From Guillardia theta CCMP2712 (Eukaryota; Protista; Cryptophyta), in contig NW_005434606.1 of NCBI RefSeq assembly GCF_000315625.1, positions 1-64,000 of the forward strand: a stretch of DNA of 64,000 nt, in the 5' to 3' direction. Below are positions 9,101-61,200 of the stretch, piece after piece (position 1 is the stretch's first letter; each line of letters begins with the position of its first letter). The notes under the pieces were generated by a model that was not told where the DNA came from, ran no database searches, and was given only the letters and a program-made list of their open reading frames with translations. The position numbers and the translations under genes are program-made.

Positions 9101-10035
9101 ATGTAAAGATCGCTCCACCTCCAAGGTAGCAGCGGGACGCAAGCGTTGTCTCGCTCGAACTATTTCCTTGGATGTCCTGAGGGCTGGTCTCGAAGTAGAG
9201 TTCAATAAACTTGCCGAATCTGGAAGAATTATCGTTCCTCAGTGTCTTAGCATTACCAAAGGCCTCAAGGATGGGATTTGACTCGAGCACCTGCCGCTCG
9301 ATCGCATGCACCGAATTAGGAGAGACCTGGTCGTGATGAGAGGAGGAGAGAACGGCAAACTGCTGCATAAGATACTTGCAGGTCTCAGTCTTGCCTGAGC
9401 CACTCTCACCACTCACAAGGATGCTCTGAGGAGAGAGATTTCCAACCATGTCGCGGAAGGCAACTTCGGCCAAGGAGAACACGTGTGGAGGCAGTTTTCT
9501 TGCTTCCTCGGCATCGTTGTAGCGGAAGGAGTGTTGATGATCGTAGATAGAAAGCTCATGCCATGGATTGACCGCCACAAGTATGGGACCTGCATATGTG
9601 TACACTTGATCCTTGAAGAAGCTGCAGCAATGCATAAGAGGTAGACGACCACGGTGACAGCTATCAGAGCTGTAACGTACCGGAGAGCCAGCCCACGGAG
9701 AATGTTTGCTTCATTCAAGTGATAGAGGCGCATGAGATCATCTCTGCTGCACACGTCGTCACTGTCTCGTGGAACTGCCTTGTTCACGGGCACGGTGACC
9801 TGACAGGAGCATTTCACTGTCCGAATTCTAGGCACGTTTATCCCCTCACCTCTCTGCCATCTGCCAGCGTAAGTTCGATGACATGTGAATCCTGCTGGAG
9901 AGATCGCTTGATCTGCATCAGAGTCATCAGTATCAAGGATCAAGCAAGTCTTGGTCAGCTCACTTCTCCCTCGTGCCATATGTCTGAATCGTCGGTATGC
10001 ACCCAAAAGCGCATTCCAGCAGATAATTTCTCCAT
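3167..10035 (-). CDS. Unconventional myosin heavy chain, multi-exon: N-terminal SH3-like region, motor domain, IQ motif, long coiled-coil tail
   Basis: Motor ORF 7611-9635 has YTYAGPILVAVNP, P-loop GESGSGKT, switch I NDNSSRFGKF, switch II DIFGFE and NSFEQLCINYANERLQ. Also converter GKTKIFL (~7150), IQ-like LQAAIRMSARRK (~6780-6810), coiled-coil ORFs 4769-5917 and 3266-4687, and start exon MEKLSAGMRFWVH at 10035. The 3' end is approximate. Confidence 0.93.
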
Positions 10036-11196
10036 TTGATTCGGAATTTTCAAATCGGATTTCAGTTCATCTAAAGGATTATGAGCACCAGAGCACCAAA
10101 TCAGAGAAGAATGGTCGAGGAGTGATGCTTCGCTCTCACATTCCATCTCAAGTGGGGTTGCAGGATGTTTTGCTCGAACGCAATTCAAAGTGATTTCTAA
10201 GATCGAGCTTTGAATTTCTAAAATCGAGCTTTGAATCCACTCGGCTTATTAAAGCAGCCAACTGCGCATGTTCTATAAACAAAGCCACTCCTCTGGTCAC
10301 AGTGCATGGTGGTGTGAAGCTAAGTTTTGATGTTGTATCATCCCCTTTCCTTCCTTCACCTTGCTCTCTTCTTATCAACACGTTCCAAGACCCTCCTCAT
10401 CTCATTTTTGATATTGCTTATGCGTGGTCTGTATGCTACGTCCCGATTTCTCACCATAGTTCATGAAGATATCGCTACCTGTAGCTTCCCGCCATGGCGC
10501 CCTTGGAACTTTTATGCCGGGAAAATCTCGACGTTCAGCCTTATAGTCAATAATATGAAGAATTCCAATTGGTCTTTGGGGATCAAACCGGGTCTGTAGT
10601 CATTGGTATCATGTCTATAGTGAATGTTTCTATTCCTGTCAACATCTGTACCTACCGTGACCAATCATAATGCGAGACAACTTCTATGAAGTTACAACGT
10701 TGCTGCTGTTTTTTGTCAATGAAATCTACGGCGGCACGTAATCATAACACCGCCGGGCTTCTCTTCAACTCGTCATATCCCAACACCACACTCCGCTCTT
10801 GGTGCAACCCGGTGACCCATGTGACAGCTTGAATATAACACTCCATTACGATCCAGCGTGTGGGATATTGCATCTTCTCAGAACAGCACCACATTCAGGC
10901 CCAGCGAAAGATGTGGCATATTGAGTGATAGTTGGTGCTGCCTTGAAAGTGATAGCAATTGTGAATCACGGTTCTACTTATTCCCCTTGCAGGACTGAAG
11001 ACCACTGGTCAGCGAGAAGGCCAAGCGTGCAAGCAATGGAAGAAAGTAGTTGCTACTTAAGCAAGTCATTCGATTCACTCAAGATATCAGATGTTGTCAC
11101 AACAATTCGATGACAGCATGGGCAAACAAACACTCATTAACAAAAGCCGCATCACTTCCCGGCTGCCATCCTCGCTTCTCACGGGGGCCCTCGCCT

Positions 11197-19245: not shown

Positions 19246-19599
19246 ACTGCGACTTATGCAGAAAGAGACAAACGGCAAGCAGCAGGAAAGAAGCGGAAAT
19301 GAAGAAAAGACTATAGCGAAGAAGTGTGTAGTCTTAGCAGTGAAGAACCTTTCATACCCGAGCCAAGAACTTTGAGGAAGCAACCAGAGCTCTCATGTTT
19401 GCGACCAACCCCATCCTGCTGAAGAAGGTTGTATCAGCAGTCATGCCACACACGTTCTTCGACTAGCCCTGACTTGCTCGACTCAGACAAACATCATTGA
19501 TCATGCCCACCACCACCACCGGCATCGTTCTATCATCGTAGACTCACCACGTTTACACTCCAAACCCATTTCATTCCTCAAAATTTCACCACACCACCA

Positions 19600-19960
19600 T
19601 CCATCATAATCGTCATCGTCATCGCCTAAATCATCATCATCTCGATCATCTCGATCATCTCAAGCATAATCATCTCAATCACCTCGATCATCGGCATAAG
19701 TGTCATAGTCATTGACATTGACATTGTCATTGACATTGACATTGACATTGACATTGACATCGTCATCGTCATCGTCGTTGTCAGCGTAAGTCCAAGCGAC
19801 AGCACCATCATTCTTACCACCACCATTGCCACAACAACATGCACTACCCTTACTAATATCATCCATATCATCCACATCAACGCGGTTGCCATAACTTATG
19901 AATTCCACAATTGTTATCTCAATCTTCATCATCACGATCCTCATCATCTCAATCTTCATG
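19600..19960. repeat. Low-complexity (ATC)n/(CATTGA)n tract
   Basis: Direct tandem tri- and hexamer repeats. Confidence 0.85.
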
Positions 19961-20148
19961 TCGTTTTCTTCTCCTCCCCAGGTTTCAACCTCGCACAGCG
20001 CTGACGCGTGCCATTCTTGGAGACCCACGGCCCGCATCCCCTCACTTCCCTCAGACTACCTAGCACCACCCTGAGCCTGACCCTGAGCACCACCTACAAC
20101 CAGTAGTACTACTACCCCTACTACTACAACGCGTCCGGTTTGTACAGG

Positions 20149-21841
20149 ATGGCGGGACTGCAAGTTGGGTGGTGGTGGGGGAGATGGAAAGGGCCCTCGT
20201 CTCTCTCTCTCTCCTTCCTATCCCCCCCTCCCCTCCTTCCTTCCTCGCAAGTCTACTCCTCAAGGCCCTCCTACGCAACTTATCCAGTCCCCTCGAGTAC
20301 CCCAACTCGGTTCACGTCGCCATGCTTTCCTTCCTACTGCTTGTATGATCGACCACGCTCTCTCTCGTCGAAGACGTTCTCCGACTCTCCGTATTCTACT
20401 CCAAAGCTTGACCGCAACACCGACGGGGCCGCGGACTCCAAGGAGCTGTTCTCGATGGATCCAGATGAGCTGGGGGCATTGCTGTTGAACCGTTTGGTCA
20501 GCAGCAAGGGTTTCAGTCATCATACTCCATTCTCGGTACCATACCGTGCACTCTCTTCTCACCTCCTCAGAATGTTGGCAGAGGTTTCAACAGGAGCACT
20601 ACGATAAGCTGAAGGAGGAGCGGGCACATGAGGTATATACTTGCTGCCAATGCGCTAGCCTGCCGTTTTGCGTGACATCACGATGCAGGAGATCGACTGG
20701 AAGGAAGAGTCGAGGGCGCTTGCGGTGAGACGATTCTGAACGTCTTGCTGCGGCACTTACGGGGCATGGGCTTGCAGAAGCAATGGGCGACGATGAGCAA
20801 GGAGGAGAAGGAGGTAGTTGGGAGGGGGAGAGAGAGTCAGGGTACGTGACATGGTGGAACACAAGCGATACCGGGAACAAGAAGTGCAGGAGGAGCTGTG
20901 GTTTACAGGACAGCAGAAGATCGCACAAGCGGATCACCAGGTAAAGGCCTTGTCGGTACAACTCCATGCACTCCTCCGCCGCCTCCTTACACGTTACCAG
21001 CAGACCTCTCATGAGGAGGGCAGCGACAATTCGAAGCTTGAAGCGCATGAGGTGAATGCTTACTAGAATAGGGCGAGTGTGCTGATGAGCAGTGCGTGAC
21101 ATCACGATGCAGGAGATCGACTGGAAGGAAGAGTCGAGGGCGCTTGCGGTGAGACGATTCTGAACGTCTTGCTGCGGCACTTACGGGGCATGGGCTTGCA
21201 GAAGCAATGGGCGACGATGAGCAAGGAGGAGAAGGAGGTAGTTGGGAGGGGGGAGAGAGAGTCAGGGTACGTGACATGGTGGAACACAAGCGATACCGGG
21301 AACGAAGATGGGCATGGGAGCTGCGTCCCAATAGGAAACGAGTTGGAGGCACGAGCAGGCAGACGTATAACGGCCTTCTCGGTACAACTCCATGCACTCT
21401 CCCGCCGCCTCCTTACAGGTCTGTAAGATTTTCCAGCACCTGATATATCATAGACTGAGGGATGAGCGGATGCGTAAGGTACATAATCGCTCGCTTGTTT
21501 GCTGATGAGCAGTGCATGACATCACGATGCAGGAGATCGACTGGAAGGAAGAGTCGAGGGCGCTTGCGGTGAGACGATTCTGAACGTCTTGCTGCGGCAC
21601 TTACGGGGCATGGGCTTGCAGAAGCAATGGGCGACGATGGGCAGACGGGAGAAGAAGGTGGTTGGGAGGAGGGGAGAGGGGCAGGGGACGTGACATGGTG
21701 GATCACAAGCGATACCGGGCAAGGGCGAGGGAGCTAAGAGCAAGAAAGAGGGATGATGACGACAGCGAGATGAGAAAGGCGACATACCAAAAGAGAAGTG
21801 ACGCTGATGAGAGTCTCAAGAATTTGAACGCGAGCAGCTGA
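20149..21841 (+). CDS. Triple HMG-box protein built from three ~420-bp exon-intron units
   Basis: Splicing GT-AG micro-introns gives box 1 HTPFS|RFQQEHYDKLKEERAHE|EIDWKEESRALA|KQWATMSKEEKE|RYREQ and box 3 RRITAFS|IFQHLIYHRLRDERMRK|EIDWKEESRALA|KQWATMGRREKK|RYRARARELRARK, matching the HMG-box pattern. The start codon is uncertain. Confidence 0.75.
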
Positions 21842-24069: not shown

Positions 24070-24868
24070 NNNNNNNNNNNNNNNNNNNNNNNNNNNNNNN
24101 NNNNNNNNNNNNNNNNNNNNNNNNNNNNNNNNNNNNNNNNNNNNNNNNNNNNNNNNNNNNNNNNNNNNNNNNNNNNNNNNNNNNNNNNNNNNNNNNNNNN
24201 NNNNNNNNNNNNNNNNNNNNNNNNNNNNNNNNNNNNNNNNNNNNNNNNNNNNNNNNNNNNNNNNNNNNNNNNNNNNNNNNNNNNNNNNNNNNNNNNNNNN
24301 NNNNNNNNNNNNNNNNNNNNNNNNNNNNNNNNNNNNNNNNNNNNNNNNNNNNNNNNNNNNNNNNNNNNNNNNNNNNNNNNNNNNNNNNNNNNNNNNNNNN
24401 NNNNNNNNNNNNNNNNNNNNNNNNNNNNNNNNNNNNNNNNNNNNNNNNNNNNNNNNNNNNNNNNNNNNNNNNNNNNNNNNNNNNNNNNNNNNNNNNNNNN
24501 NNNNNNNNNNNNNNNNNNNNNNNNNNNNNNNNNNNNNNNNNNNNNNNNNNNNNNNNNNNNNNNNNNNNNNNNNNNNNNNNNNNNNNAGGCACGAGGGGAT
24601 GACCAGGCGGAAGGTACGAGGAGATGACAAGGAGGAAGGCACTAGCTATGGTGATGACACAGACTCGGGCCTGGGGAGGGTACGAGGGGAAAAGGGGGTG
24701 GTGGTGATGTGGGAAGANNNNNNNNNNNNNNNNNNNNNNNNNNNNNNNNNNNNNNNNNNNNNNNNNNNNNNNNNNNNNNNNNNNNNNNNNNNNNNNNNNN
24801 NNNNNNNNNNNNNNNNNNNNNNNNNNNNNNNNNNNNNNNNNNNNNNNNNNNNNNNNNNNNNNNNNNNN
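24070..24868. other. Assembly gaps (N runs ~24070-24586 and ~24718-24868)
   Basis: N characters. Confidence 0.99.
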
Positions 24869-30509: not shown

Positions 30510-32328
30510 ACTCGGCTCGCTCCTCGACAAACTCGGCCTCCGAATGACAACTGCGGCTCAAAATGCGTCACTATGTTTTTTGAACAGGGTCGTGAATGTT
30601 TCCCCGCCCGCCTGGTGTGTCAGCTTGAGCGTGTGTGGCATATTCGTTCAACAATTTGTTCTAATTATGTGTGTCGTGGAAACGATGATTAGCTCCCCAG
30701 TTTCTATGTGATTATGGTTAAACTTGAAGCATACAAGGATGGTCTGAGTCGGTGCAGTGCTGTTACTCAGTACTTTGGATTCGGAAGTTCCGGGCCGCCG
30801 CCCTGACTGGTTCGAAGCCGTTGGGTTACTCGGTGGCAGTGTTAGTGATCTTTCGGTTCGCCGCCGGTCCGGCGGGCCAAACCGCATTCGACCGGCGGCG
30901 TGAAGCCTCAGAACGGTTACATTGATTATCGGATTAAATAACGGTGCATCGATGTTTGACCTTTCAATCGCAGGAACGGACGCATCTGTCCGACTACCCC
31001 TAGCAAGCGGCATTCGGCCATGGGACCGTAGGTGGTTCCACAAGGGTACTCGCCGTCAGTGCCTCGGGAAGGGAGTCGAGGGCAGGAGTGGGGCTGAATG
31101 CAGTAGTTTTGGGTGGGGTGGGGTGGGGTAGGACAGATTGGGGTGGGTAGGGTAGGGTAGGGTAGGGTAGGGTGGGGCGGACTGATGTGGTGTGGGGTCG
31201 GATTCTCCGAAAAAACAATTTTTGGGCCGCATGGAGAAAAGTTAACTTTCAACATATAGATACCCTGAAAGTTAATCTAGTCCTTGAAAGTGAATACGTC
31301 TTGAAACTTTTGGTAAAACGATTTTAGAGAAGTGTGCCTAACGGTCGCAACGCTTTGTAACGACCAACGGTAACGCAAACTTACAAACCATCCCTACCCC
31401 CCTTTTAAGTACAAGAGAAAAGAACCGACCCCTCAACTTAGGACTACCCTTGATTATCCTCTTTGTCTGACTGAAAGTGGCCTTTTACTACCCCTCCAAT
31501 TCCACGACTTGGCTATAGAGGGATCGGGGGATCAGGTACCCACCCCAGAGATGTGCGTTGGTATTTTTCAAAGTTCACACATACCCCACCCATCCTATAG
31601 AAAAAGTAACCCCACCACCATTATCCGGTCAAAGCACCGGTTCATTTGTACGGTGTGGGATGACCCCCACCCCCAAACACCTTCTTAAAGCAAACTCCGT
31701 TCGTTTTCTCAAAGTGGGACGTTGGAAGCACGTAGATGGTCATGAGGGAGGGAAGGGAAACAAGGAGATGGAGAGTGTTGGAAGACAAGGATAGCAAGGA
31801 TTGCGATAGCAGACAAGAAGACCGAAACAATTAACCACAGAAAGAGAAATAAACACAGACAACGTCATCAGCAGAAAGTCTCTCCTGTAGTAGTCAGACG
31901 ATCAGACCTAGGGACAACAATGCAAGAAGACATGTTGCAGAGAAGACAGTGTCCAAAGAAATCGAAAAAAATATCAGAGGAGGAAGAAGTTTGCGGTAAT
32001 GGTCAAGTAATAGAATGTATCAAAACCAGCTCGTGGCAGAGGGAAGTCAAGAAGGGATAAGCAGCGTGCACTGTCTTGGGCAAAGATGACTTAGAGGTGA
32101 CAAAAAAAAGTACAAAGCAATCGACAATGATAGAGAGTTGTGCTACTGAGAGTGATTAGCAGAGAAACTTGCTCATGTTTGAAAAAGATAAACAGTGTGA
32201 GCATTTTCTGATTGTTGTCCGCAGAGTCGCTTCGCGCATTAGCAACTTGGTGCAGGATCTGAATGAGAATGCAATTCTAAGTGGACACAAAACCTCAAGA
32301 ATCAAGAAAACTTGTTTCGTCATCGAAA

Positions 32329-33894
32329 ATGTACTCCGATGACATGTTTGCTCTTGCTCCCAAACCAGCAAGTTCTTCGAAACGAAACAGATCAGGAAAC
32401 GAAGTCGCTACCACCTTGCAGGGAGGGTCGTCGAGCATTGACATATCATGCTCAAATCACGAATCGAAGATGTTGAGTTCCTTCCATGTCATGCTCAAGG
32501 AGAATTTCCTGTGCGACATGAAGGTCACGATAGGAAGAGCCAAGGTCCCTGCGCACTCCATCGTGCTTGCTAGCTGCAGCTGCTTCTTCAAGAACAAGAT
32601 CGCCAAGGGGTCGCGAACCGTCAGCCTCGACCCCAACGACCTCAGCGTGCAGGACTTCAGAACCCTTCTTGACTGCATCTACAAGGGCAAGATGTCTCTC
32701 ATGGAGGAAGCGATCCCCAAGTTCATCCAGATCACCGAGAAGCTCGAGCTCGAGAACATCCGGGCCGCGTGCGTCATGAAGCTCGTATCCCGGATCAACG
32801 AGGGCAACATGGAGCGGATGCTTGTCACCGGCAACGACATCAAGTGTAAGGAGATCATCGACGCTGCCAAAGCTGCCATGCTCAAGGCGAAGTCAGCTCA
32901 GGTCAGCGAGCAGGCCTCGAGCGTGTCCAAGAGCATCAAGTGCCCATGGACGAAGGAGGAGGATGACCGTGTGGCCGACCTTGTCGCTCGTTTCGGCGTC
33001 AAGTCATGGTCCGCACTCGCCACCTACATGCCTGGGAGGACGGGGAAGCAGATCAGAGAGCGATGGCACAACCACCTGGACCCCAACGTGAGGAAGGAGC
33101 GCTGGACACCTCAGGAGGACGCAGCGATCATAGAGGCACATGCGCATCTGGACAACAAGTGGGCGGAGATTGCCAAGCTGTTGCCGGGAAGGACGGACAA
33201 CGCAATCAAAAACAGGTGGAACTCAACGCTGAGGAGGGTGGTGGAGCATGGCGCTGTCATCAGCTACGACTCTGAGAGCCGGCAGAGCGACGAGCTGGAC
33301 AACAGCTCAGACACTGCGAACAAGAAGCGGAAAGTTTTGACACACCAGGAGCAGTCGAAAGGCAACGAGGACAAGCCAGTTGGAGAAGGAGCGAGGACGC
33401 GGGAAGGGACGGATCGACGAGCTGAAGAGGAGCTGGGGCGTAGCTGCTTCGATGTCGACGAGATGTCGGAAGAGACGGAGGAGGATGTGAACTTCACTCA
33501 TGATCTGCACGAAGAGGAGCTCGGGAGGAACGAGGCTGACGTACTGCAGTTCGAGGAGGAGGAGGAGTCCAAGAGAGCAGCTACCTCTAAGCTGTGGACG
33601 CGAAGACCGCCCATCAGCATCCAGACAGAACGAGAGGAGCTGGCGACCTGGCCATCCAACTTTTCTCCCTCCGTTGCCCTTGAAGAACTTTTCTGCCTCT
33701 CCTCCAACGTGACATGCGTCGGTGGAGGGACAACCTCGCCTGGACTGGGGGTTTGTGACGTTTTCTCCTCCCTCGGGGCTAGCAAGGGCGACAAACCCCT
33801 GGAGAGCCTCGAGGAGGATGGGGACAGACAGGGCAGGGAAGTCTCTGCTCCCTCCTCATCGGTAGCTTCGCCCCCCAAAACCCTCAAAGTTTGA
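32329..33894 (+). CDS. BTB/POZ + R2R3-MYB transcription factor
   Basis: BTB: [27 protein letters not shown]...[14 protein letters not shown] repeats: [10 protein letters not shown]...[17 protein letters not shown] and [10 protein letters not shown]...[23 protein letters not shown]. Confidence 0.92.
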
Positions 33895-40100: not shown

Positions 40101-40861
40101 CTGAAAATCTTGATCTCACTCTCTTCTCCAGGAGGTCCATGCACTCCAGACAATTTGACAACCCCAAGACAACCTGCCGTCCTCATCAGTGCCTCATCAA
40201 AACTGGTCTTCCTCTTTCTCCTCCTCCTCCTCGTCCTCCTCCTCGTCCTCGTCCTCCTCCTCCTCCTCCTCCTCCTCCTCCTCCTCCTCCTCCTCCTGTT
40301 AGTGATGGCTTTATTCGCTCNNNNNNNNNNNNNNNNNNNNNNNNNNNNNNNNNNNNNNNNNNNNNNNNNNNNNNNNNNNNNNNNNNNNNNNNNNNNNNNN
40401 NNNNNNNNNNNNNNNNNNNNCGATGCTGACCAACGACGCCGGAGAGGTCACAAGCCATATCAACGGCCTGCTGATGCGAACGACCAAGATGCTGGAGTGC
40501 GGGATTAAGCCTCTGTACGTGTTCGACGGGAAGCCGCCCGAGCTGAAGAAGGACACGCTTGAGGAGAGGAAGGAGAGGAGGGAGGAGTCAGAGGCTGCCT
40601 TGGCCAAGGCAAAGGAGGAGGGAGATGAAGAGGTACCTTGAGTGATCCTACATCCTCTCCTCATCCTCCTCTCCTCCTCTCCTTGGCTGCTGCCTCAGCT
40701 GTCGTTGGTCGCAGCGGAGAAACTGACGAGTCATGGTCAGGCTGTGGAGAAGTTTGCTAAGAGGACTGTGAGGGTCTCAAAGGAGATGACGGAGGATGCC
40801 AAACAACTTCTACGGCTTATGGGCGTCCCAGTGAGTCTTGTCCTCCTCCTCCTTTTTCTTA

Positions 40862-48060: not shown

Positions 48061-48247
48061 ACAAGCAGCCTGCCACCGAAACTCCGAGGCTCAGTTTACT
48101 TTCAGCGATCTCCAAACGATCAGACATCAAGAGCCTGAGAGGGTTCACTGGCCAGAGGCTGACAGTGAGCATGAAGGAGGAGGGAGGAGGGAGGAGGGAG
48201 GAGGGAGGAGGGAGCCTGCGGAGGAACTTAAGGAGGCACCACCGTAG

Positions 48248-51200
48248 CTAGTTCTGTAGGTTCTGCAAGGCCTCCATGACGAGGGAGCGGAACTTGCCGT
48301 CCTTGACGTTCACCTTGCTCACGTCGTCCTTGCTGATAGTCTCCAGTGCTGCTCCCAGCAGCCTCATGGCGTTGTTGTAGTTCCTGTCAGTCACCCCCAC
48401 GAACTCCATGTCGACGTCTCCTCCTCGGGTGAGGATCGCCATCTGCAGCTGCAGGTCGATCTCTCCGTCTGTGCACAGGATGCCGCCCGCAAGCCTGGGA
48501 TGCAGCATGGAGCTGCTGCTCTCGGGGAGGATCCTCCACACCCCCAGCTCGGCGTCGTTGTTGCCGAAGAGCAGCTGCCTGTGCTTGCTCCACAAGTCCG
48601 TGATCTGCGACGCTGTCCCCTTCCCCTTGGCGACAGCCCAGAGGGCGGGGAGAGGTTCTTCCCAGAGGTCGTAGCAGTCCTCCGAGTAGAGAGCGACGTG
48701 CAGTAGCACGTCGTTGAACGACAGCCTCGGGTCCTCCTCGTCCGAGCAGCTGAGCAACTGGGCAAACATTCCCCCCCAGAGCCGGGAGATCCGCTCGATG
48801 GGCTCATCCGCTAGGATCATCTTCCTGCTGAGAGACACGAGCGTCTGGATGAGAAACACAGTCTTCTCCTCTGCGTTGTCGCTCATCTTGCACGAGATCA
48901 TGTCCTGCATGTGCGTCGACGCCCAGATCAGACAGTCGACCAGCGTGCTCTCAGTCTCTGTCGGCCTGTCGCTGCTGCCGCCGTCGGGTTGACCCATCGC
49001 CCTCAACAGCGCTTGCGGAGAGTCGAGCGAGTTGTCGTAGAGTATCGTCATCCACAGAGCTGTGCGGTAGGGGCTCAGGTACTTGTCCTCCTCGGCGTTC
49101 TCCATGCCGATCTGATACTTGAGAATGTCCTTGGCAATGGCGAGGCTGTCGGAGGGAGAAGACTTCTTGAGCAGCGAGCACAGGTTGTCGTTCTTGAGTG
49201 CCGAAAGCACCTTGGCAGGGGAGGTGCAGACGGAGAGCAGCTCCACCAGCAGCGAGCTGTCTTGCACGGGCTCCGTGTTCCAGCACTTGTTCTGCACGTC
49301 GTTCCAGTCCACCGAGTGTCCGTGCTTGACGGCATCGATGATGTCTTCGAGCCTGGAGTAGTCGCCCCCCCAGGAGAAGGCGATGCCCTCGGCAAGCTCG
49401 TTGTTGCACTCCACCTCCAGCTGCAGCGGGAACCCGCACTGATCCACGAGCTTGTTCTCGAACATGACCTGCGGATCGTCCATCTTGCTGCATCGCTCGA
49501 CCCCGCCTGATGCGGGGTCCTTCCTCGCCTGCGCACGCATGTGGCAGCACCAAGCCGCGATTCTCAGAGCAGGAGGAGCGTCGTAGGCGCGATCGAGGCC
49601 GAAGGAGACGAAGTCAGGGAAGTCCATCCCGAGGTTGTCGGCGTTCTCAGTGAGGAGAGCCGCTTGAAACATGGAGGCCACCATCCCCTTGAGGCTCCGA
49701 GTGATGGAGAGGATCGGGTCCTCCCCCCTCTTCGCTCCCTCCATGGCCGCCAGGAACGCCTCGGCGAACTGCTGTGCGGTAATGGTGGACACTGTGGGAA
49801 CCTTGTTCAGCAGGAACCCAGCAAGCTTCTCAGCTGAGATGGACGAGGTCTGCGACAAGATGTCCTCGAGCTCGGCGATCCCTCGAAGGGACACGGCCTC
49901 GCCCCCAAAGATGCACCGGGCGCAGTGCATCCACTTGCGGATCCCTGAGCCGTTGCGGGTCTTCTTGGCGTCCATCACCTCGCTCAGCAGGGTGTTTCCG
50001 AGACGCGTCACGATGTCGACCACGCGCTCGGGCTCGATGCCGATCTTGGTTCCATCCTCCTTGAGCTGTTTCAGGTGCTCCAGGTCTCGGGAGTCCTTCC
50101 GGTTGGCAATCAGCAGCACGTGGAGCCTTCGCACGTTGAGCCGCAGCCACTGGAAGAGCTGAACCTTGTGGACGTCCTTGAGCATGTGGAACTCGTCGAC
50201 TATGAGAAAGAGGTGAGCCGAGGAGTCCGCGATCTCGCACTCGAGGATCTCCGTCAGGGCCATGTCGACAAGCCGATCGTCACTACCATCTATGAAGGCC
50301 TTGGACATCTGATGCCTTCCCTTGAGCTCCTCTGCGATCTGGTTGGAGAAGAAACTCTTTCCTGCTCCAGGGGGAGAGCAGAGGAGGACGAGGCAGGGCT
50401 TGGCTTCCAGCATGATGTCTTTCAGCGACGTCCTGTAGTCGGCAAAGTCTTTCTCGCTCTTACTGCCCCCTTCCCCTCCGAAGAACTCCGACACAAACCT
50501 CTCGGTCTTCTCCCAGCTGCTGTAGAAAGGCTTGCCATTGACAGCCTCGAACTTGGCGATGGACTCTTTCATCCTCGGGTAGGGCTGAATGTGTGTGGGG
50601 CGCAGTCGGACAACGTGCTCTGACTGCAAGTCTGCCTCATTCCGGATGCTCCTCTCAATAGGAGCAGGAGCAAACTCATACACGCACCGATCTCTGTTCT
50701 CCGAGAAGTTCCAGCTTGTCTGCGTGTTCTCTAGGTACACGAACCGCCACGGGTGTATCCGAGTGTACTCCGCCAACCATTTCAGCAGCGCGTCCTCGAT
50801 GCTGTCAAGCCCGGTCACGTACACCAGCCAAGTGTAGGCCGAGAAGTGACCGATGATGGTCAGGTACATGCTCGCGTTGTCCTTCGATCGAGTCAGCGCG
50901 TCATATCCCAGATCGCAAACTTCAACGATGGCCCCGTGCTTCTTCAGCTCTCCCAACGTGCCCCCACGAACGATGTGCACGCCGTACAGGTCGTTCTTGC
51001 GCTTGCAGAACGGCAGGAAGTGAGGAGGAACATGGAAGGACCTCTGGAAGAGCGAGAGGCAGTGGTTGGGGGAGGGCAGCGAGATCGCCACACAGTGGGC
51101 GATGACGAGCAGGTTCAAGTCTCCTCCTATGCTGCCGGAAGAGCTGTCTTCGATGCACAGCGACGGGACCCTCGCGGTCGTTGGGCCCTTTTCGAGCTGG

Positions 51201-54200
51201 TTAAGGAACCAAGACTTGGCGTCTTCTGGCAGGGGTGACCGGACAAGATTGCAGAGCCAGCTGAGCAGGTCACTGCGGTGAGAGAGCAGGTCGTAGATGT
51301 GCTCTGATATGTCCGTGTCTCCCGAGATGTTCGACTTCTTGGTCTTGACCTTGAGATAATGTTCCAACGACTTGACTAGGAGGCTCTTGTGGAACACGTA
51401 GACTATCGGCAGCCCGTCGCGCTCGTTGTACTTGATTTTGAGCCTCTTGACGTCGATCTGAACTTGATACAAGGGAACCTTCTCCCCTGAGAGAGACATG
51501 ACGGCAAACTTGGAGCAAACTCTGTTCCCGTAGCCCCAGGTGGCTGGGAACAAGGAGTTCTGAGCTGTTCCGGAGTTGCTCTCAGGGTTATCTGTCGGCA
51601 GGTCATGCACATCGTCTATGTAAGTGACTTTCTCCTCTTGTCCTTGGCCGAGGTTTCTCTCCTTCTTCGCCGAGTCGATGAGACGCTTGGTGTTGTCATC
51701 GGTCTTCTTCGTGTAGACCTTCTCCTGCTGCTTCTCCTCCCCTTCCGAGTCAGAGTCTTCGAAGTGCTGAGTCCAGACCGACTGCGCGTTCAGCCGCTTC
51801 CGTCTGGTGATGGAGGTCAGAAACTCCACCGACTGCTCCATGAACTTCTGCTGGGTGATGTGCTCGTGCGCCGTGATCAGGTTGTTCAGCACCGCGTTGG
51901 CATTCCGCGTCCCATCGTTATCGAACCGAACAAGGTACGGCTCGTCGTTGTTGGCTTCGAAGCTGATTCTCAGCTCTCCATCCACCTCTTCGTTGATTTC
52001 CAACTCGTCTCCTCCATTCGCATCGTCCAACCTTGCCAGGAAGCTGCTCTGATTATGCTCCGCCAACTTCAAGGTGAACACCATCTGTGACCTTGGCACC
52101 CAGTCTCTGATCCCGACGATGAGCGACAGGTTGTTGGACATGGCCTCTCCCAGGTGAGTCAGGCACTGGCTCTCGACATTCAGATCCTGCTCCAAACTCG
52201 GCAGATCCAGGTACTCCAGCACCGTGTTCAGCCCGTTGTCATCCTCCTTGATCTCATCCATGATCCTCAGGATGGCTTCGCAGACGATGTTCTCGGACCG
52301 GATGTAATCGCAAAACAAGTTCTCTTCCTCCCCCTGCTCGTCGCTAATACGCCTGAGCTCATTCAGCACCTGATCGATCTCCTTCAATTCATCTGCATCC
52401 CAGCCACGAGCTTTCTGCGCAGCAAAGTACGACATCTGGACGATTGATTTGATCGTTTCAAGAACAGCAGCGTCGAAGTCGAGCACTGCTAGCTTGCAGA
52501 CGTCTAGCAAGGTGTAGAGGAAGACAGGAGGGTTCTTTGCGCTATCCAGAGATGCTGCTCCCAACAAGACCATCCAGTCTCCTTCCAAGTTCTTGCGCAG
52601 GTAGAACCCCTTGGCTGTGATAGTCGACAACCTCGGGAGGTTGTTGAGATGCTCCCAGGCTCCCCCGTTGTGGGAGAAGATGGCTTCTATCTCAGCGAGC
52701 TGCCCCAGCTCTGCCTCGTCGAAGCTCTTCTGCTGTCGTCGCCGCAAGTTGGTCTGCTGCGACAGAGGAATCTTTCGTGAGTCTCCGGGGCTTCGCAAGA
52801 CCGGGTTCAGTCCTGGCACGATATGGACGATGCCGTAGCCGTCCTTGATGTTGAGGCTCACCAGCTTGCGGGCTGAGATCGTTCGCTCCGCCTGATTCAT
52901 GTCCCTTCGCAGCTTGCCGGTCACTCGCGAGCTCTTGGACTGCTGGGGACGGAGACGATCGGAGGAGAAGGCGGTCTTGAAGAGCGTCAACGTCTTTCGC
53001 TCGACAAGAACTTGAGGGCTCTGCCTGTCATGATCGCGAACATGATCGAAGTTGGCGAACCTCTTGTTCTCCACGTTCTTTGCCCTCCTTCGCGCCATGC
53101 TGCCTCGATCTGCAGTCTCAACCGCAGGCGCAGAGGAGGTGTGGAACTCGAAGCCCTCCTTGAAGATAATATCCTCATAGATCTTCAACTCTCTGCCAGC
53201 ATTTAAGATATCCTCTATCTTTTGCGGCAGCAAGGTTTGAGCCGGGCATCTCACGTAATGCTTGTGTTTGTGATTCCTTCTCTTCTTGCTGCCCACAAGA
53301 TCCAACAGTCTTTGAGACAGCTGCTTGTAGTCATACTTCGCATACAGGTTCGTTGCGATGTACTCAATCTCGTTCAGAACTGACGAGCTGTAGACAATGT
53401 TTTGTCTTTGCCACTCACGAAGCATACACACAACCTCAAACCCCTCGTTCACTGGGGTGATCCCAATCAGCGTGTACAGCGTGTCTGCTACAGTGACCTG
53501 CAGCTTGTCGGAACATCTTTTCAGACCCGAGCACAAGCCTTGGACGCAACTTTGAATGATTGCCTCGCCGTCACATGATCGCAGCTGTGAGAAGAAATCT
53601 GCGATGGTCACCATGTCTTCGACGACTCTGCTTTGCATCTGAGCCTCATTCGTAGTGAAGTCCCTCTGAGCAATCGCAGGATTCCTACTGGTCTCCTTGA
53701 GGTTGGTTGCCACGTCAGCAAACTTTGCTTCCAAGGCTGATCCATCAATCTGCCATGTACTAGTCAAGTCACATTGAGCTGCGAGCACATACACACCGCT
53801 TCCAGGAAGGTCCCATGCCCACATTCCGCCAGCCTCTTGAGCTTGTCCACCTGCAACGAGGTCCCGAAGGCAAGCGTGTTGACTTGAAGGCCGTACTGCG
53901 AGTATTTAGAGTAGAGAAGCTGCAAACCTTGTTAGAGGTCAACGCGTAGAGAACACAAAATTTGACCTGCATCTCCCGCTCTCCGTTCTCATGCGAGTCG
54001 CCATCGGACATGAACAAAATGACTGGAGGAAGCTGAGAGTTGTCCGTCTGCGACAAAATGCGGTCGACCTCGCTCAGAGCAGGTCCGAATGAAGTGCCCC
54101 CTCCTTTGAGAACAAGGTAAGCGTCCAACTTCGCTAGCGCATCGTCTAGAGTGATATTCTTGCACAGAGTCCTGGCAGATGAGTTGAAGGCAACCATAGA

Positions 54201-57200
54201 GATCATGTCTTTTGCGCTTGCAGTCTTACGAATATTGAAGAAAGTTCGAACTGCAGCTACGAGACTTGCCCAACCTGACCCTGCCATGGAGCCAGAGTCG
54301 TCCAGCACGAAGATGACGTGGAAGTTTGCGGGGTCGTCTTTGTACTCAGCGGAGAAATCCACTTGTGAATACTTCTGCTCAAGCTTATGAGCTATGCTCT
54401 CCATGACCTCCTCCATCAACTTGAGCGGAAAGTTCTGGTCGTATGTCTCCCCGTCTCTGATCTTCTTCGTGTGCTGCAGGTATCGGGTGATGGGGCCCAT
54501 GTCTCTCACATCGAACTGCAGCAGAAGGGTCAACAGCCACTGGATCGTCAAGCTCTCGCTGTCGGAGTTGCCTTGGAACAGCGGAATGTTGTCTTTGCCG
54601 CTCCGGAAGCGAACATCCATGTACACTGGAAGAGGACAGTAGACCATCTCGGTAGTGAACTTGGGCTGGCTCCATATCTTTCGCATCTTGAGGAGGTTGT
54701 TGTTGAGAGTTTGCTTCAGCCTACTCCCACTCATCTTCCCGAGGTCTTCAAGAGACATGCCTGCAGCATAGAACCAAGCCAAGCCCGTCAGGAAGATCTG
54801 CGCTCTCTGCTCCTGAATCTTGGTCTCGTCGATGGAGTTGAGGGTGTCGTCGATATGCAAGAGGATGTTGAGGTTGTGCAGCACAAGCTCTGGGGTGACG
54901 CCCTTGTCTGTGATAGGAAACATACGCCTGAACTTCTCCTTCTCCTGGAATTGAAGTCCAGGGAACTGAGAGTTCTCCATAGACTTGATGAGGAAGTCTA
55001 CACAGCTCCTCGGAAGGTGGCGGGAGTGACACCTAAAACTGTACACGGGCCATCCTGCTTTCTGAGCCTGACCGACCACGTAGTTCTCGTTCTCGATGAG
55101 GTTCTTCGTGCCAATCACGTTGCGCTTGATCGCGTTGAACATGCTGGCTGGCAGCGTGTGAGGAGCAAGAGTGAACCTGGCAAGATTGCTCAGCCCCTGC
55201 AGCGACGAGAAGGAAGGGTCAGCTGCTCGAGCGACTTTCTTGAAGAGCATCCAGCTTCCTGGCTGCGGGCTGTGACGCAGCTGCAGGGACCGGGCAGGAC
55301 AGGCCCACCAGCAGAACCAAAGGAGGGCAAGGAAGGACTCGTTGCTCTCCTCTGGTGTAGCGTTCATGACGGTAAACATAGTGCTCCTGGAGAGCTCGTT
55401 GTGCAGCAGCTCGACGTGTTTCAGCAGGTCAGCCTCCTCGAACGTCTTGTTCTTGAAATGCATGATGTAAACCGTGCAGAGCTTCTTGGAGCTTTCAAAC
55501 GGCAGGTCGAACTTGTGGGACAGTGCCATCTGCATCAGGTCCCTGGCACACTCGTTATCGGCAAAGGTCTTGTAGATGAGGGACCAAGGCTCAGGAATCA
55601 GGTCAGAAGGGAAAAGCACTGGCGGTTCGAATCCATGTTCGGACAAAACTTCAATCATCTCTACAGCAAGAGCTCGAGTCTGCTGCGTGCACAACCCGTT
55701 CAAGAACTCTGCATAGAAATCGAAGGCCTTCTCCTCTCCATGCGCTGCCTTGATGGCTTCGAGACTTGGCACGAGGATCCCATCCCTGAAGAGGGTGAGC
55801 TTGTACGGAGGATTAGCCGACTTGACAAGGTGAAGGAGAGCCTTGGGCCTCACCCGAGCTGCGATCGACGTGGAAGTATTGACCATGTCCACCATTGCAA
55901 CTGAGTCTGCGTCCTTAGCCCATTCCAGCCACCCGCCAAGAATATTCTTCATCACCGACCCATATGTCTCTTGGAGTATCTTGGTCAAGTTTTCTTTGGA
56001 CAGGCAAACGCTCATCAGAGCTCTACCGATCCTGAGGCTCGGGTCCGACAGCATCTTGCTGATCTCAACTTTGTTCTTCTCAGACATGATGAAGTCTCTG
56101 ATCGCATGCTGCTCGCTCAATGTCTCCACCTTATCCAGCGCGATCATCGCCCTTGCGACCGAGAGGTACAATTGAAGCTTCTCACCGCTCGTTACTTGAT
56201 CATCGGAGCCCTTGGTCTCAAAGAAGATGCCGTTCTTCAGCAGCAGAATCTGGTCCTCCTCGAAGTAGTCGTTGGTCAACACGGCAGTGGACCCAGAAAC
56301 CAGTAGCAGCCACCAGATAGCTGCCGTTCGAGATCTCAGCACGTAGAACTTGTCAGTCGGCAAGCTGTGGAGCAGTCCCTGGCAAGCAGAGTAATCCCTC
56401 TCGATCTCCTGGATCCCATCCTTGCCCAGCGTCAGGTTCACGATCTGGGAAGGGCTCAAACTCAGCAGCAGCATGATTCGGCTGGGCGAGTGCGTGCAGA
56501 TATGCTTGAAGACTTCGCTGGTGAGCTCAGGGCCTGTCTGCCACTTGACAAACATCTCCTCCCAGTTCAGCTCCGCTCCCACGATGGACTGATGCTCCAT
56601 AATCTCCTGGTGTCGGATGATGGCGTCGCCCTTCCCGGGGTCGAGGTACATGGGGTACTTGGAGCGGTTATCATGGAGGTGTGACTGATGGTAAGACAAT
56701 TCAGCGCACAAGAGCCTGCCGGGGTTGTTGGCACAGTGAACATTGGCGTCCCCCAGGTTGGCCGTTTGAATCAGGGGGAGGCCGAAAGGGAGGTTCTTCT
56801 CCCTGTGAACTAGAGAGCTGCCTTCGTCTGTGTTCTGACAAAGAAAATGGATGTACGCCTCAATGCGATGCAGCTGGCTCAAGAACCGAACGCAAGGTTG
56901 ACGACAGAAGTCCGCAAAGCAGATCAATGGCATCTCATCAGTCCAACTTTCAGATGTGCATCGGATGTAATGGTTGACATGCCGTGCAAGGAGGCCAGCA
57001 AGAGTTTTGCATTCCTCTTCCAGCACTTTGCAAGGTACCATGATGGGCTGATCTGCCTTGGACAGATTGCTGAAGATCTCCTCCAGGACATGCTTGTTCT
57101 CAACTCTCAGCAAGTCGTCATTCTGGTCAAGAAAGTTCAGTAGATTGAGATTCTGCATCCCTCCTCTCATGAACTCTTCAATAAATCCTTTCTGGGTATC

Positions 57201-60200
57201 AGTAATGATGTGATCTAAGGAGAACATCAACTTGAGACCTCTGCAGATCAACCCGTACTTGTCAATATTCTTCTCCGGGTAGATATTATTCCTTTGAGTC
57301 AGTATGGGAGCATGAATCCATGTAGGTGGCGAACGACTGTCCTGATAGATTCTGAATCTGCAGAGGCTGACAAGCGGGCATGTAACCAGCAGAACGATCT
57401 TGACGTTCGACTTGAAGCACCGAGATATCAAGACTTCGAGCTTTCTCTGTGGGAGGAACGAAGCTCTTGAAAGGATAATCGTTGGGCACTTGATCGAGCT
57501 GTTCACATTCTTCTGGCGATTCTTCTCCTCGGCCCGAGCGCCTGTGATACGAAGCTCTGAGTTCTCAGACAAGAACTCCTTCAGGTTGTCAAAGTTAGAT
57601 CTGTCTCCGGCATCGATCAGTCGTATTTTGACAGCCTCATACGCCGATTCATAAATAGTATTAGCAGTCCAGCTGTGATCCGAGCACACTAGAATGCGAA
57701 TGAAACTTTCCATCTTGTCCGCCTGAGAGACAGGCTGGTCCATCCACTCCCTCACAGTCTGTAGCCACCTCCCGCACTCCATGGCGTACTTGAGAGGAGT
57801 CTCTTTGCACCAATACGAACGGCAGAGCTCTTGAGGAGTTTTACAGAGTCGATCGTAGGTTTCATTCAGTACGGAGCCGACAGCAGATTGCCTTGAGAAT
57901 GAAATGGGCAGGAATTTCTGGTCAATAGATTCTCTGATGCTATCGGGACGATAGATGAGGTCTTTAAATGACGGACTGAATTCCAACAGCTTGAGTATGC
58001 TGTTCGAGTGCCGGAAGATCATCTTGAAGGCAGGAGCTGGTAACGTAATGAGCTGATTCATCTGGTCTGCCGTGATCTTCCCAGTGATGTTCACATACAG
58101 GAACGTGATGGAAGTTGGGTTCGCTTGCTTGAGCTTCAAGAAGAGAGACTCGAAATTGCTTTCCTCCACAAAGACTTCTTCTTGTGCAAAGTGAGTTTCC
58201 TTAGAAATGATTGTGGGCAAGTAGGTCAGGTGATCTTCAGAGACGATTGCGATCCTCTTGTTGAGATTTGCCCTCATGCCAACGAAATGCACGGATCTGT
58301 CTGCATCGGAAGCCTCAGGGCTCACGACATTGAAGTTGTCATTTTCAAAGCTGTTGGAAGACCCCGCGGTGATCAGATTCAACACAATCCTTCTGCTCTC
58401 TTGCTCAGTCACACTCAGTCTGTTCAGATTCTCGAAGGCCCCCTTCATCTTCGATTCCCAAAACTTAGTAACCAAGTTTGCAAGATCCGGGTGGACAGCG
58501 TGTAGCAGCTGGACACTGGCATAGTACAAAACCAGCGCGTTGTTCTCAATCTCCTTCATGATCAAGTTTGAATAATCATCTTGAGTCATGTTTTGTCGAT
58601 CGATGGCATTCAATCCAAGCACCTCTGAAGCACAACAGTCAGAAAATCGACATCATTCACAAACAAACTTCAATCACAACATGAACATCAGGACGTTTTG
58701 ATTCAACAACTTCGAGCTAGAATATCAATACCTGCGATTACTTCTGCACTCTCCATGAACCCTTGACCTCGCGGTGCTGTCGCGGTCAATCGGCCAGTTC
58801 CAGTCTGGTACACGGCACTCGGGGGCATCAGCACAGCTAGACGGTAGAAGGGGAGGACTTCGGTTGATTCACCAACCTGACAAACTGAGGCGATCGGCTC
58901 CACGGCCAAGGCACTGTACCCAACACCCTCAGTCTTGACGTTGCCAACCTCGCGCAGGTCTATCAGAAATCGGCTTCCTGCATCTGAGATGTCTTGAAAA
59001 TGGGACCCGCCTTCCGATCTCTTGTCGTTGAGGACAAGCAGGATGTGAGTGAACTTTGGAGTCGACGGATTTGTCTGCGACAAGATCTCTTCGACCGTCT
59101 TGGCGTTGGGAGAGTGCTTGTCACGGTTGACGAACTGATAGAAACTGATTGAGTCCGATGTTTCTATCCCTAGACCGCAAGTCTTCAAGACATCCACCGT
59201 ATCGTCATGTTCAACACTGAGGTCAAAGTTCAGATAGTTCCCAGACAGGCTCAAGCCTATCTCAAACAAACGAGAGTCCAGCTCTTGCCGAGAGTCATTA
59301 GAGTCTGTCTTCCTGTACAAAGAGACCATCCTGACAACTACCGACTTTTCTTCGGACTCGGGGACTCCCTTTTTCTCATTGTGTGCCATCTTGTACCCAA
59401 ACACAGCAATGCGCCTTCCTTCGCCGTGCATGGTCTTGGCATCCTGCACTTGTTTCTGGGACTCCAAGATTGCTTCCCGCACACACGCCAGACGTCCGGC
59501 TCTCCGAGCATTCTCCCGCAGGTTCACCTTTCGTTCCATGTAAACCTTGATGTAGCTCGTGAGATTCGTCATCATCGACGGTGCACTGAGGTCGTCAAGG
59601 AACTTGAAGATCTGTGGTTCAGGCACTCCTTCAAAGTCCAGCACCGACTTCCACTTATCCCACACTCGCTTCTCCTCATTCACATATCCCTCGATCTGCT
59701 CTAGAGTAGCAGTCTCTTGTCCGCCAGGATGGTCATGGTAAAACCTGTCAAGCTCGGTGTTTTCAAAGTCATAGCGATCAACACTGTCCAGCTTACAAAA
59801 CGGAATCACTCCGACGTCTGCGGCCCGTCGCATGGCACTCTCGAGAGATTGTTGAGCTCGGTAATAGTGTTCCATGCACCGGATGATGAACATCTGAACC
59901 TCGGTGTAAACGTTGTTCAGCTCATCATTCTGAAGGTCCTCCAGTTTCTCAGCACGTTTCAACCATTCCTCGGTCAAGTTTGCATCAAGATCTCCAGGCA
60001 TCTTGTCACGAGTCGTTCCAACGAGACCTCGGAGTATGGCTGCCATTTCAACAGGATGGTAACGCTTTGACCTCACGTGCACTATGGAGAAACCAAACTT
60101 CTCTTCTGTGTGCTTCTCAGTCGACGTGGAGACTCCAGTCAGCTTTTCCAGATGATAGCTCAAAAAATCTCTGTCCCAACGATCTTCTGCACCGTAGAAC

Positions 60201-60688
60201 CTCCTGTACCAATTGCTATCGGAATGAAGAGGCCTCATCGCCTCTAGAAGACTATCCATGTTGCTCTCTTCATTCTCAAGGATTCGAGGTCCCAGGCGTC
60301 GAAACGTCTCGTAGTAGATCGGCTGATTCAGACCAGTCAGCCGCGCTGCCACCAGGACCTTCCGCGCAACGCTGATCTTCACCCTCTCATAGGGAGCGTT
60401 CTGGATCCTAGAGTGCCAGAACTTGAGAGCCTCCCTCCACAGGCACGCTTCCTTGCCTCGTTGCCTCACATTCATCAAGTAGATTGCCTGAGTGTTGGTA
60501 AACCATACTTCATTGAAGCCCGTCTCCGGAGGTCTGTTGCCTTGTGCATTCGAGCTCGGTGCCAGTGCTCTCGGAACAGCTGTGGCTTCATTGTGAAGAG
60601 CGTTTCGGCCCGATTGCGAGTTGATGTCTCCATCAATGTCCTCTGCGTCCGAAAAGGATGCGTCTGACATACCTGCTGTATTCGTCAT
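48248..60688 (-). CDS. Giant (~4,080 aa) vWA + P-loop NTPase (AAA+/STAND-like) protein; 4 exons
   Basis: Exons 60688-58732, 58624-53967, 53919-53797 and 53749-48248 join in frame through GT-AG introns of 107, 47 and 47 nt. vWA MIDAS: VLDDSGSM, GGGTSF, FMSDG. Walker A CSPPGAGKS; Walker B FLIVDEFH. Confidence 0.88.
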
Positions 60689-61059: not shown

Positions 61060-61200
61060 CAGAGGACAGGACAGGACGGGACGGGACGGGACACGACAGG
61101 ACGGGACAGGACAGGATACGACACGACACGACACGATAGGTGGGGAGGAGAGGGGATAAGAGAAGAGGAGAGGAGAGGAGAGGAGAGGAGAGGAGAAGAT
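61060..61200. repeat. Compound pentamer microsatellite (GGACA/GGGAC/ACACG/GAGAG)
   Basis: Direct tandem repeats. Confidence 0.9.

Follow-up and report, generated by a model that had tools for sequence, protein, structure and literature searches.

The window examined here is a stretch of 64,000 nucleotides (nt) from the cryptophyte Guillardia theta CCMP2712 (assembly GCF_000315625.1, contig NW_005434606.1, positions 1 to 64,000 of the forward strand), and the minus strand at 48248-60688 carries a giant gene that is the subject of this report. The locus is one nuclear gene with four exons and three short introns, and its product is ~4,075 amino acids (aa) long. In the explanation that we favor, and regard as reasonably probable, this single gene encodes a giant AAA+/vWA protein of an unnamed family, in which an ATP switch would control a partner protein bound at the metal ion-dependent adhesion site (MIDAS) of the vWA domain.

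Gene structure and evidence for splicing

Three long open reading frames (ORFs) make up the gene, at 58703-60688 (661 aa), 53769-58622 (1617 aa), and 48248-53824 (1858 aa). ORFs this long, at ~53% G+C, cannot be chance products. An earlier note on this DNA, made from the letters alone, had proposed that the three ORFs are pieces of one gene, joined across three canonical GT-AG introns in a way that completes a vWA fold. Excision of the introns, all of which run from GT to AG and which are 107, 47, and 47 nt in length, gives a coding sequence of 12,240 nt, or 4,079 codons and a stop, without a single internal stop codon. All of the following parts are on the minus strand. Exon 1 (58732-60688) holds codons 1 to 652 and the first base of codon 653, counted from the first ATG at 60688, and is followed by intron 1 (58625-58731). 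Exon 2 (53967-58624) encodes residues 653 to 2205, including a conserved block at residues 1690 to 2025 and the N-terminal two thirds of the vWA domain, within which intron 2 (53920-53966) is located. Exon 3 (53797-53919) is a mini-exon of 123 nt that contributes residues 2206 to 2246, also part of the vWA domain. Beyond intron 3 (53750-53796), exon 4 (48248-53749) encodes residues 2247 to 4079 and ends with the stop codon at 48248-48250. The homologues P0022, P0023, and P0024 open with MSD, matching the second ATG of the gene, at 60670 and six codons past the first; the true start is thus probably that second ATG, which would give a product of 4,073 aa.

Introns in Guillardia theta have a mean length of 106 nt and a mode of 47 nt, and there are 5.3 introns in the average gene of 1,863 nt (PMC6260743). 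The three introns of the giant gene agree in size with that mean and mode. Their density of 0.24 per kb is ~12-fold lower than the Guillardia average of ~2.8 per kb derived from the same publication (PMC6260743), which supports the description of the gene as nearly intron-free in the earlier note.

Database searches were run with the exons separately, and the joined protein was used for coordinate mapping and local comparisons only. The nearest relatives were transcript-derived proteins from another cryptophyte, Hanusia phi, showing 60 to 78% identity; exact look-ups of the ORF products of the window returned no record. The Hanusia identities indicate that the window is nuclear DNA of a cryptophyte and not of human origin, and the intron sizes point to a source near Guillardia. 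One of these, P0024, aligned across junction 1 without gaps; another, P0002, spanned junctions 2 and 3 without gaps at 78% identity over 120 residues; and a third, P0001, aligned through to the final residue of the giant protein. A metagenome homologue of 2,295 aa (P0017) is intron-free through junction 1 and ends at junction 2, and a further homologue (P0003) begins directly after junction 3. The homologous locus L001 contains a counterpart of the mini-exon, at 11046-11174, flanked by the same two intron positions, and the position of intron 2 is retained in L001 and missing from a second locus, L004. An environmental contig, L002, was 95.1% identical to the giant gene over 5.4 kb, with 161 of the 201 exon substitutions at third codon positions and no exon indels, the one indel being of 1 nt and in intron 1. 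The ratio of nonsynonymous to synonymous substitution rates (dN/dS) relative to L002 was 0.065 over the 1,663 N-terminal codons. The junction-spanning homologues, the kept intron positions, and the L002 comparison together argue that the gene is real, is spliced as proposed, and is under strong purifying selection, so that both the single spliced gene and the three introns of the earlier note stand.

The opposite reading, that these are three separate genes or a decaying pseudogene in which the splice sites are coincidental, could draw on Hanusia contig 434294, which carries two ORFs (P0023 and P0005) with intron 1 retained, and on prokaryote-style gene callers, which split the locus (P0022). 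Against it are the spliced Hanusia proteins that cross every junction without gaps, a vWA fold that is complete only once the exons are joined, two homologues (P0025 and P0030) whose single ORFs of 3,600 to 4,000 aa span the full length of the giant protein, and the low dN/dS with no exon indels, and we consider that reading essentially excluded. On the transcript contig 434294, P0023 and P0005 correspond to exon 1 and to exon 2 onward of a paralogue that lacks the vWA domain, and the intron 1 equivalent is kept between them, which suggests intron retention or pre-mRNA in the Hanusia phi transcriptome data. Antisense to exon 2 is an unsupported ORF of 505 aa (54387-55904, plus strand), whose most likely source is the sense-strand codon composition.

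The C-terminal core and its ATPase module

The part that defines the family is the C-terminal core, in which a helical bundle is followed by a domain that we call domain X, by one AAA+ module and its lid, and by a C-terminal domain that is helical. The AAA+ module and helical lid (49802-50437, minus strand) comprise residues 3351 to 3562 and are located 83% of the way along the chain. The Walker A motif, SPPGAGKS, is at residues 3371 to 3378 (50354-50377) and is the one and only GK[ST] P-loop in the 4,079 aa, in keeping with the single intact P-loop near the C terminus that the earlier note had described. Walker B is at D3431/E3432, and further positions of note are N3462/R3463, R3495, and R3535. 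Both Walker motifs, the N/R pair, and the lid arginine are invariant or nearly so in 63 to 70 relatives. R3495, in a TRL motif, is at an SRC-like position, and its invariance is limited to 10 close relatives. The Pfam AAA model (PF00004) matched marginally, at 22.7 bits with a cutoff of 21.2. The features that mark the AAA+ superfamily were all found, namely Walker A, a Walker B of the hhhhDE form, N3462 at the sensor-1 position, and an alpha/beta core with a helical lid after it. From these conserved motifs, the single ATPase site is predicted to be competent.

Structure models were made for the conserved core (residues 2900 to 4079) and for domain X. The AlphaFold2 (AF2) model of the core, built from a 70-sequence alignment, had a mean predicted local distance difference test score (pLDDT) of 88.1 and a predicted template modeling score (pTM) of 0.82. 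It runs from a disordered acidic stretch through the helical bundle and domain X (~3170 to 3302) to the alpha/beta core of the AAA+ module at residues 3351 to 3493. Beyond this are the lid, up to ~3562, a helical domain, a small three-stranded sheet, and a long helical C terminus. No beta-hairpin inserts or extra strands were present between the strands of the AAA+ core in the AF2 secondary structure. The region past the lid (48251-49801, minus strand; residues 3563 to 4079) is thus mostly helical with the one small sheet, has a pLDDT mostly above 90, and is conserved throughout the family by profile coverage. Comparisons with hhalign revealed no further AAA-like module in residues 1006 to 2205 or 2900 to 4079, residues 1 to 1005 and 2276 to 2899 being outside the test.

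To which type of AAA+ protein the module belongs was approached by sequence profile, by fold, and by family-wide Pfam matches. A profile of domain X plus the ATPase, compared with PDB sequences, matched Ctf18, RFC5, RFC3, Cdc48, ORC1, and Cdc6 (E values of 4e-6 to 1e-4), and the ATPase module has an FDxSxD motif that resembles RFC box IV. Foldseek comparison of the core model with the PDB returned dynein motors, NSF/Sec18/p97, SAMD9, Avs3, ORC/Cdc6, and RFC at E values of 2e-6 to 5e-5. The Pfam families matched among 63 members were AAA_22 (49 members), AAA (41), AAA_16 (20), nSTAND5 (10), NPHP3_N (6), ORC-CDC6-like (4), and AAA_5 (1), and neither AAA_3 nor Mg_chelatase was among the 25 Pfam families listed for those members. 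We read the module as insert-less and closest to the clamp-loader/initiator type, and a relationship to STAND proteins is possible.

The STAND-type matches bear on a different reading of the protein, as an innate-immune sensor resembling STAND/NLR proteins such as SAMD9 and Avs. The nucleoside triphosphatase (NTPase) would then be an oligomerization switch gated by ADP and ATP, the scaffold and vWA domain would sense a pathogen ligand, and the oligomer would trigger a response. We think this unlikely. The Foldseek alignments with SAMD9 (9zjs, 9zjr, and 9zjz) extend over ~1,040 to 1,190 columns at E values of 8e-6 to 3.5e-5, and Avs3 (8dgc) was also matched; however, the template modeling scores (TM-scores) for SAMD9 and Avs3 were just 0.12 to 0.17. 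The weak Pfam matches to nSTAND_NTPase5 (10 of 63), NPHP3_N (6 of 63), and AAA_16 (20 of 63) favor this reading; the hhhhDE Walker B and the best sequence-profile matches, which were to RFC, Ctf18, ORC, and Cdc6, speak against it. No recognizable effector or death-type domain was found in the protein. The distribution of the family, taken up below, bears on this alternative as well.

Domain X and the unannotated regions

Preceding the AAA+ module is domain X (50582-51292, minus strand; residues 3066 to 3302), which has an alpha/beta core at ~3170 to 3302 and no P-loop. No other block of the family is as well conserved, and K3236, E3240, E3263, and R3267 are invariant in 62 sequences. Modeled alone, domain X gave an AF2 pLDDT of 90.4, and a Foldseek search with the model yielded no significant PDB neighbor. 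The fifty best Foldseek matches were weak (E values of 0.01 to 0.06) and nearly all were AAA+ proteins, the others being P-loop proteins. An hhalign comparison of domain X with the active AAA module was not significant, so that an origin by tandem duplication is unproven. It is plausible, though likewise unproven, that domain X is a degenerate AAA-like module that lends conserved Glu and Arg residues to the neighboring active site.

When large relatives were compared by phmmer, four conserved blocks emerged, at residues 1690 to 2025, 3066 to 3280, 3365 to 3580 (the ATPase), and 3617 to 4030. The first of these (54507-55514, minus strand) contains no known domain, having no Pfam or PDB match, and is the sole part of the N-terminal half that phmmer detected in distant full-length relatives (P0057, P0040, P0029, P0027, P0044, P0028, and P0059). 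Direct sequence searches of the PDB with each ORF returned nothing, nor did a profile of residues 1006 to 2205. There is no signal peptide, convincing transmembrane helix, or zinc-finger pattern in the giant protein, which is therefore probably soluble and intracellular.

The central vWA domain

The vWA domain, with a complete MIDAS, comprises residues 2081 to 2266 (53690-54341, minus strand) and is split by introns 2 and 3. It lies 51 to 55% along the chain, the central position that the earlier note had given it. The Pfam VWA model (PF00092) matched at an E value of 6.4e-11 and 43.2 bits, the cutoff being 23.8. A profile of family-member vWA domains covered the spliced residues 2081 to 2266 from end to end, indicating that the vWA fold is completed by exon 3 together with the first part of exon 4, as had been proposed. 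The MIDAS residues are D2094-x-S2096-x-S2098, T2163, and D2193, within the motifs DDSGS, GGGT, and SDG.

Other members of the family carry the domain elsewhere or do without it. In the Hanusia paralogues P0001 and P0005 and in the 3,870-aa P0025, both vWA flanks aligned by phmmer and exactly residues 2087 to 2275 were missing. At least 12 other family members have a C-terminal vWA domain, including P0014, P0015, P0045/P0176 (from Barroeca), P0047, P0048, P0050, and P0051. The MIDAS was intact in all 11 of the family vWA domains that were aligned, 4 of them central and 7 C-terminal. In a tree of the core, 7 of 8 rows with a C-terminal vWA fell in one clade, and the giant protein was placed in a different, well-supported clade in which the other full-length members have no vWA. 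Absent from the closest paralogues and C-terminal in another clade, the vWA domain is, by this comparison, accessory and not family-defining. The central and C-terminal positions in different clades indicate, on the tree, that a MIDAS vWA was recruited to the ATPase scaffold at least twice and at different positions. Such repeated recruitment argues for functional coupling with the ATPase.

For the vWA domain itself, the closest relatives, at 37 to 39% identity, were C-terminal vWA modules of four other large proteins (P0018 to P0021) that come only from environmental contigs in ENA and JGI; P0019 and P0021 are ~2,450 aa long. The partner to which the vWA is joined in this group is an RHD3/Sey1-type GTPase or a SecA-like DEAD motor, and one of the fusions also includes DnaJ. 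Judging by these fusions, a vWA of this type seems to be mobile and to combine as a module with different NTPases.

Distribution of the family

Compared with 1.84 billion proteins, a profile built on the C-terminal 1,180 residues retrieved 546 cluster representatives at an E value of ≤1e-3, of which 171 were at ≤1e-30. Members are often 3,000 to 4,861 aa in length, with the matched core near the C terminus. Among the choanoflagellates, Monosiga brevicollis has two adjacent family genes (MONBRDRAFT_38957 and 38958), and members are also found in Salpingoeca infusionum and Barroeca monosierra. Bodo saltans has at least 7 paralogues, some with consecutive accessions on one contig, and Hanusia has at least 3; in Monosiga and Bodo, genes of the family stand in tandem, two or three together. 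Further members are from Symbiodinium species, Amoebophrya, and Kipferlia bialata. In the 30 clusters for which the source was traced, no animal, fungal, or plant member was found. Taken together, the matches describe a family that is, as far as sequence comparison reaches, eukaryotic, widely but patchily distributed, often multicopy, and not a specialty of algae.

The earlier note had called the protein an undescribed algal sensor or remodeler, possibly for defense. The word "algal" has to be given up, considering the choanoflagellate, Bodo saltans, Symbiodinium, Amoebophrya, and Kipferlia members. "Undescribed" seems correct, and the family seems to be unnamed as well: the named relatives are all labeled "hypothetical" or "AAA+ ATPase domain-containing," and the literature yielded nothing on the family under the identifiers of six relatives (from Monosiga, Bodo, and Amoebophrya) or by keyword. 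Four Symbiodinium proteins of 3,126 to 3,235 aa (CAE7214831.1, CAE7626221.1, CAE7528509.1, and CAE7945400.1) are labeled "PAT23," which looks like a transferred misnomer. The search for paralogues and orthologues that the note had suggested was productive for cryptophytes and other protists, and no relative was confirmed in viral contigs. Pattern scans, run with A1 and separately with P0014 over 185,579 prokaryote genomes and also over IMG/VR, gave no confirmed relative, their sensitivity being limited to the motifs used. A kinship with giant viruses was unsupported, Foldseek comparison of the core with viral structures (BFVD) giving generic AAA+ and RFC matches only. NCBIfam matches were at the level of the P-loop or the vWA domain only, and Pfam analysis of the neighbors of homologous loci was uninformative. 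On the metagenome contig L004, which carries a family member, a nearby ORF (19282-20430) has a weak match to Ulp1/C48 peptidases (E value of 2.5e-5).

This distribution contributes to the reading of the protein as an innate-immune sensor, to which the patchiness of the family, its lineage-specific expansion (at least 7 paralogues in Bodo and at least 3 in Hanusia), the tandem pairs and triplets in Monosiga and Bodo, and the shuffling of the vWA as an accessory domain would be congenial. A defense role thus has circumstantial support, from paralogue expansion, tandem arrays, and the weak fold matches to SAMD9 and Avs3. Speaking against it, the dN/dS of 0.065 carries no arms-race signal in the first 1,663 codons; the one PADLOC family matched was mad8, at an E value of 1.5e-4 and over the P-loop region only; and the pattern scans revealed no relatives in prokaryote genomes or viral contigs. 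A broader proposal would make the whole family an ancient, unnamed eukaryotic group of giant AAA+ proteins, each with a single site, that serve protists as innate-immune sensors or executors and are the functional counterparts of SAMD9, NLR, and Avs proteins, with domain X as a new regulatory or catalytic module and with MIDAS vWA domains, recruited independently, that trap pathogen or host proteins. We consider that proposal distinctly unlikely.

The same data bear on whether the protein might be a housekeeping factor for assembly or remodeling, comparable to what midasin is in ribosome biogenesis, whose MIDAS would pull an assembly factor off a large complex. The presence of an AAA+ module and a MIDAS vWA within one giant chain, the strong purifying selection, and a family range of several eukaryotic supergroups are all consistent with such a role. 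A universal single-copy factor would look different, however: the family has many paralogues and tandem copies, and there is no animal, fungal, or plant member among the 30 clusters. Moreover, close paralogues dispense with the vWA, and there is a single AAA+ site with no six-module ring and no AAA_5-type modules. We judge the housekeeping role very unlikely.

Possible mechanism

The favored explanation remains that of a giant AAA+/vWA protein in which ATP controls a MIDAS-bound partner. In the cryptophyte subfamily the insertion of the vWA lies ~1,100 residues upstream of the ATPase, and in another subfamily a vWA is C-terminal. The metal site of the MIDAS would capture an acidic side chain of a partner protein, and the single AAA+ site would act as an ATP-driven switch by which the giant scaffold changes its conformation or its oligomeric state. 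By this switch the MIDAS-bound partner might be held, released, or remodeled, following the same logic as the AAA+/vWA pairs of midasin, MoxR-vWA, and Mg-chelatase. Because the AAA+ module is without the inserts of those pairs, it is more likely to be a switch or assembly ATPase than a threading unfoldase.

Several points weigh against this explanation. No relative of the protein is characterized, and the mechanism is argued by analogy to other AAA+/vWA pairs. The closest paralogues have no vWA, and so the core function cannot depend on that domain. Some 2,900 N-terminal residues are without a recognizable domain. The TM-scores of the core in Foldseek were low throughout (0.10 to 0.17), so that assignment to an AAA+ clade rests on weak sequence-profile matches, and STAND-type matches (SAMD9, Avs3, nSTAND5, and NPHP3_N) compete with those of the RFC/ORC type. 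Finally, the view of domain X as a degenerate AAA module derives from matches with E values of 0.01 to 0.06 and has no hhalign support.

The pairing of AAA+ and vWA domains is a recurring molecular device, known from midasin, MoxR systems, and Mg-chelatase. The giant family would represent a separate lineage of it, in which an insert-less, RFC/ORC-like, one-site AAA+ protein acquired a MIDAS vWA at least twice and at different positions. There are hundreds of members across eukaryotic supergroups, with no family name and no Pfam model for the most conserved domain. The confident core model (pLDDT of 88) and the clear catalytic and MIDAS residues provide experimental handles in Guillardia, choanoflagellates, and Bodo. 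The locus also shows how prokaryote-style gene calling breaks such genes into "hypothetical" pieces.

Other features of the window

Two pentanucleotide microsatellites of ~14 and ~10 copies are located at 61063-61196, 400 to 500 nt upstream of the start codon of the giant gene. The stretch that holds them is pyrimidine-rich, and on the gene strand they read CCTGT/CGTGT-like and CTCCT. A similar CTCC-rich run lies past the stop codon, near 48160-48220. Elsewhere in the window, an ORF of 674 aa (7611-9635, minus strand) accounts for the greater part of a myosin motor domain (Myosin_head, E value of 1.5e-178); since the match covers profile positions 204 to 624 of 679, the rest of the motor must sit in other exons. 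An ORF of 537 aa (32281-33894, plus strand) encodes a BTB/POZ domain and two Myb DNA-binding repeats. Assembly gaps, present as runs of N totaling 768 nt, are located at 24070-24586, 24718-24868, and 40321-40420, and they explain an apparent low-GC block at 24 to 26 kb and the spurious ORFs there.

Comparison with known systems

Midasin (Rea1; MDN1) is likewise a giant single intracellular chain (~4,900 to 5,600 aa) that combines AAA+ modules with a MIDAS vWA, which grips an acidic residue of its partner. It differs in that six AAA+ modules, in tandem and of the dynein/MoxR type, lie toward its N terminus and the MIDAS is C-terminal, past a D/E-rich linker, and it is near-universal in eukaryotes. 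The giant protein, in contrast, has one Walker A motif and a central vWA and belongs to a patchy multicopy family in which AAA_5 was matched in 1 of 63 members. RNF213 (mysterin), which the earlier note had named as an example of a giant NTPase in innate immunity, is also cytosolic and giant (~5,200 aa); it is an AAA+ protein that has few active sites and is implicated in immunity. Its AAA core is dynein-like and made of six modules, and it carries a RING/E3 module, whereas the giant protein has one AAA+ module and no zinc-finger pattern, with a vWA domain instead. The earlier note had held that the architecture matches neither midasin nor dynein, and this is upheld by the near absence of AAA_5, the lack of a second AAA module by profile comparison of residues 1006 to 2205 and 2900 to 4079, and the lack of hairpin inserts in the model. 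Midasin, dynein, and RNF213 are all ruled out by the one GK[ST] in the whole protein and by that profile comparison over those residues, which leave room for at most one degenerate extra module (domain X).

VWA8, the MoxR-vWA systems, and the Mg-chelatase BchI/BchD (ChlI/ChlD) resemble the giant protein in that they functionally couple an AAA+ ATPase to a MIDAS vWA, and some members of the giant family share with them the order of AAA followed by a C-terminal vWA. Their ATPases contain helix-2 and pre-sensor-1 hairpin inserts (AAA_3, AAA_5, and Mg_chelatase), whereas no such insert was seen in the module of the giant family, and the systems are 10-fold smaller or are split over two proteins. 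The match of AAA_5 to 1 of 63 members and the absence of hairpin inserts from the model rule out both VWA8 and the helix-2-insert clade of MoxR and Mg-chelatase.

By sequence profile, the ATPase of the giant protein is most like RFC, Ctf18, ORC1, and Cdc6, with which it shares a PPGxGK[ST] Walker A, an FDxSxD motif, a DE Walker B, an insert-less core, and a helical lid. Those proteins are 300- to 1,000-aa subunits of hetero-oligomeric rings bound to DNA; the match to the giant protein is limited to the ATPase fold, and the flanks are unrelated. SAMD9/SAMD9L and the bacterial Avs proteins are similar in overall plan, each being large and multidomain with a single P-loop NTPase at its center and helical domains after it, and they too belong to patchy, expanded families. 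Among the Foldseek alignments to the core of the giant protein theirs were the longest collinear ones, at the low TM-scores noted above, and they differ from it in having SAM, AlbA, SIR2, or OB domains and in Walker B, which in the giant protein is of the DE form and not of the STAND type.

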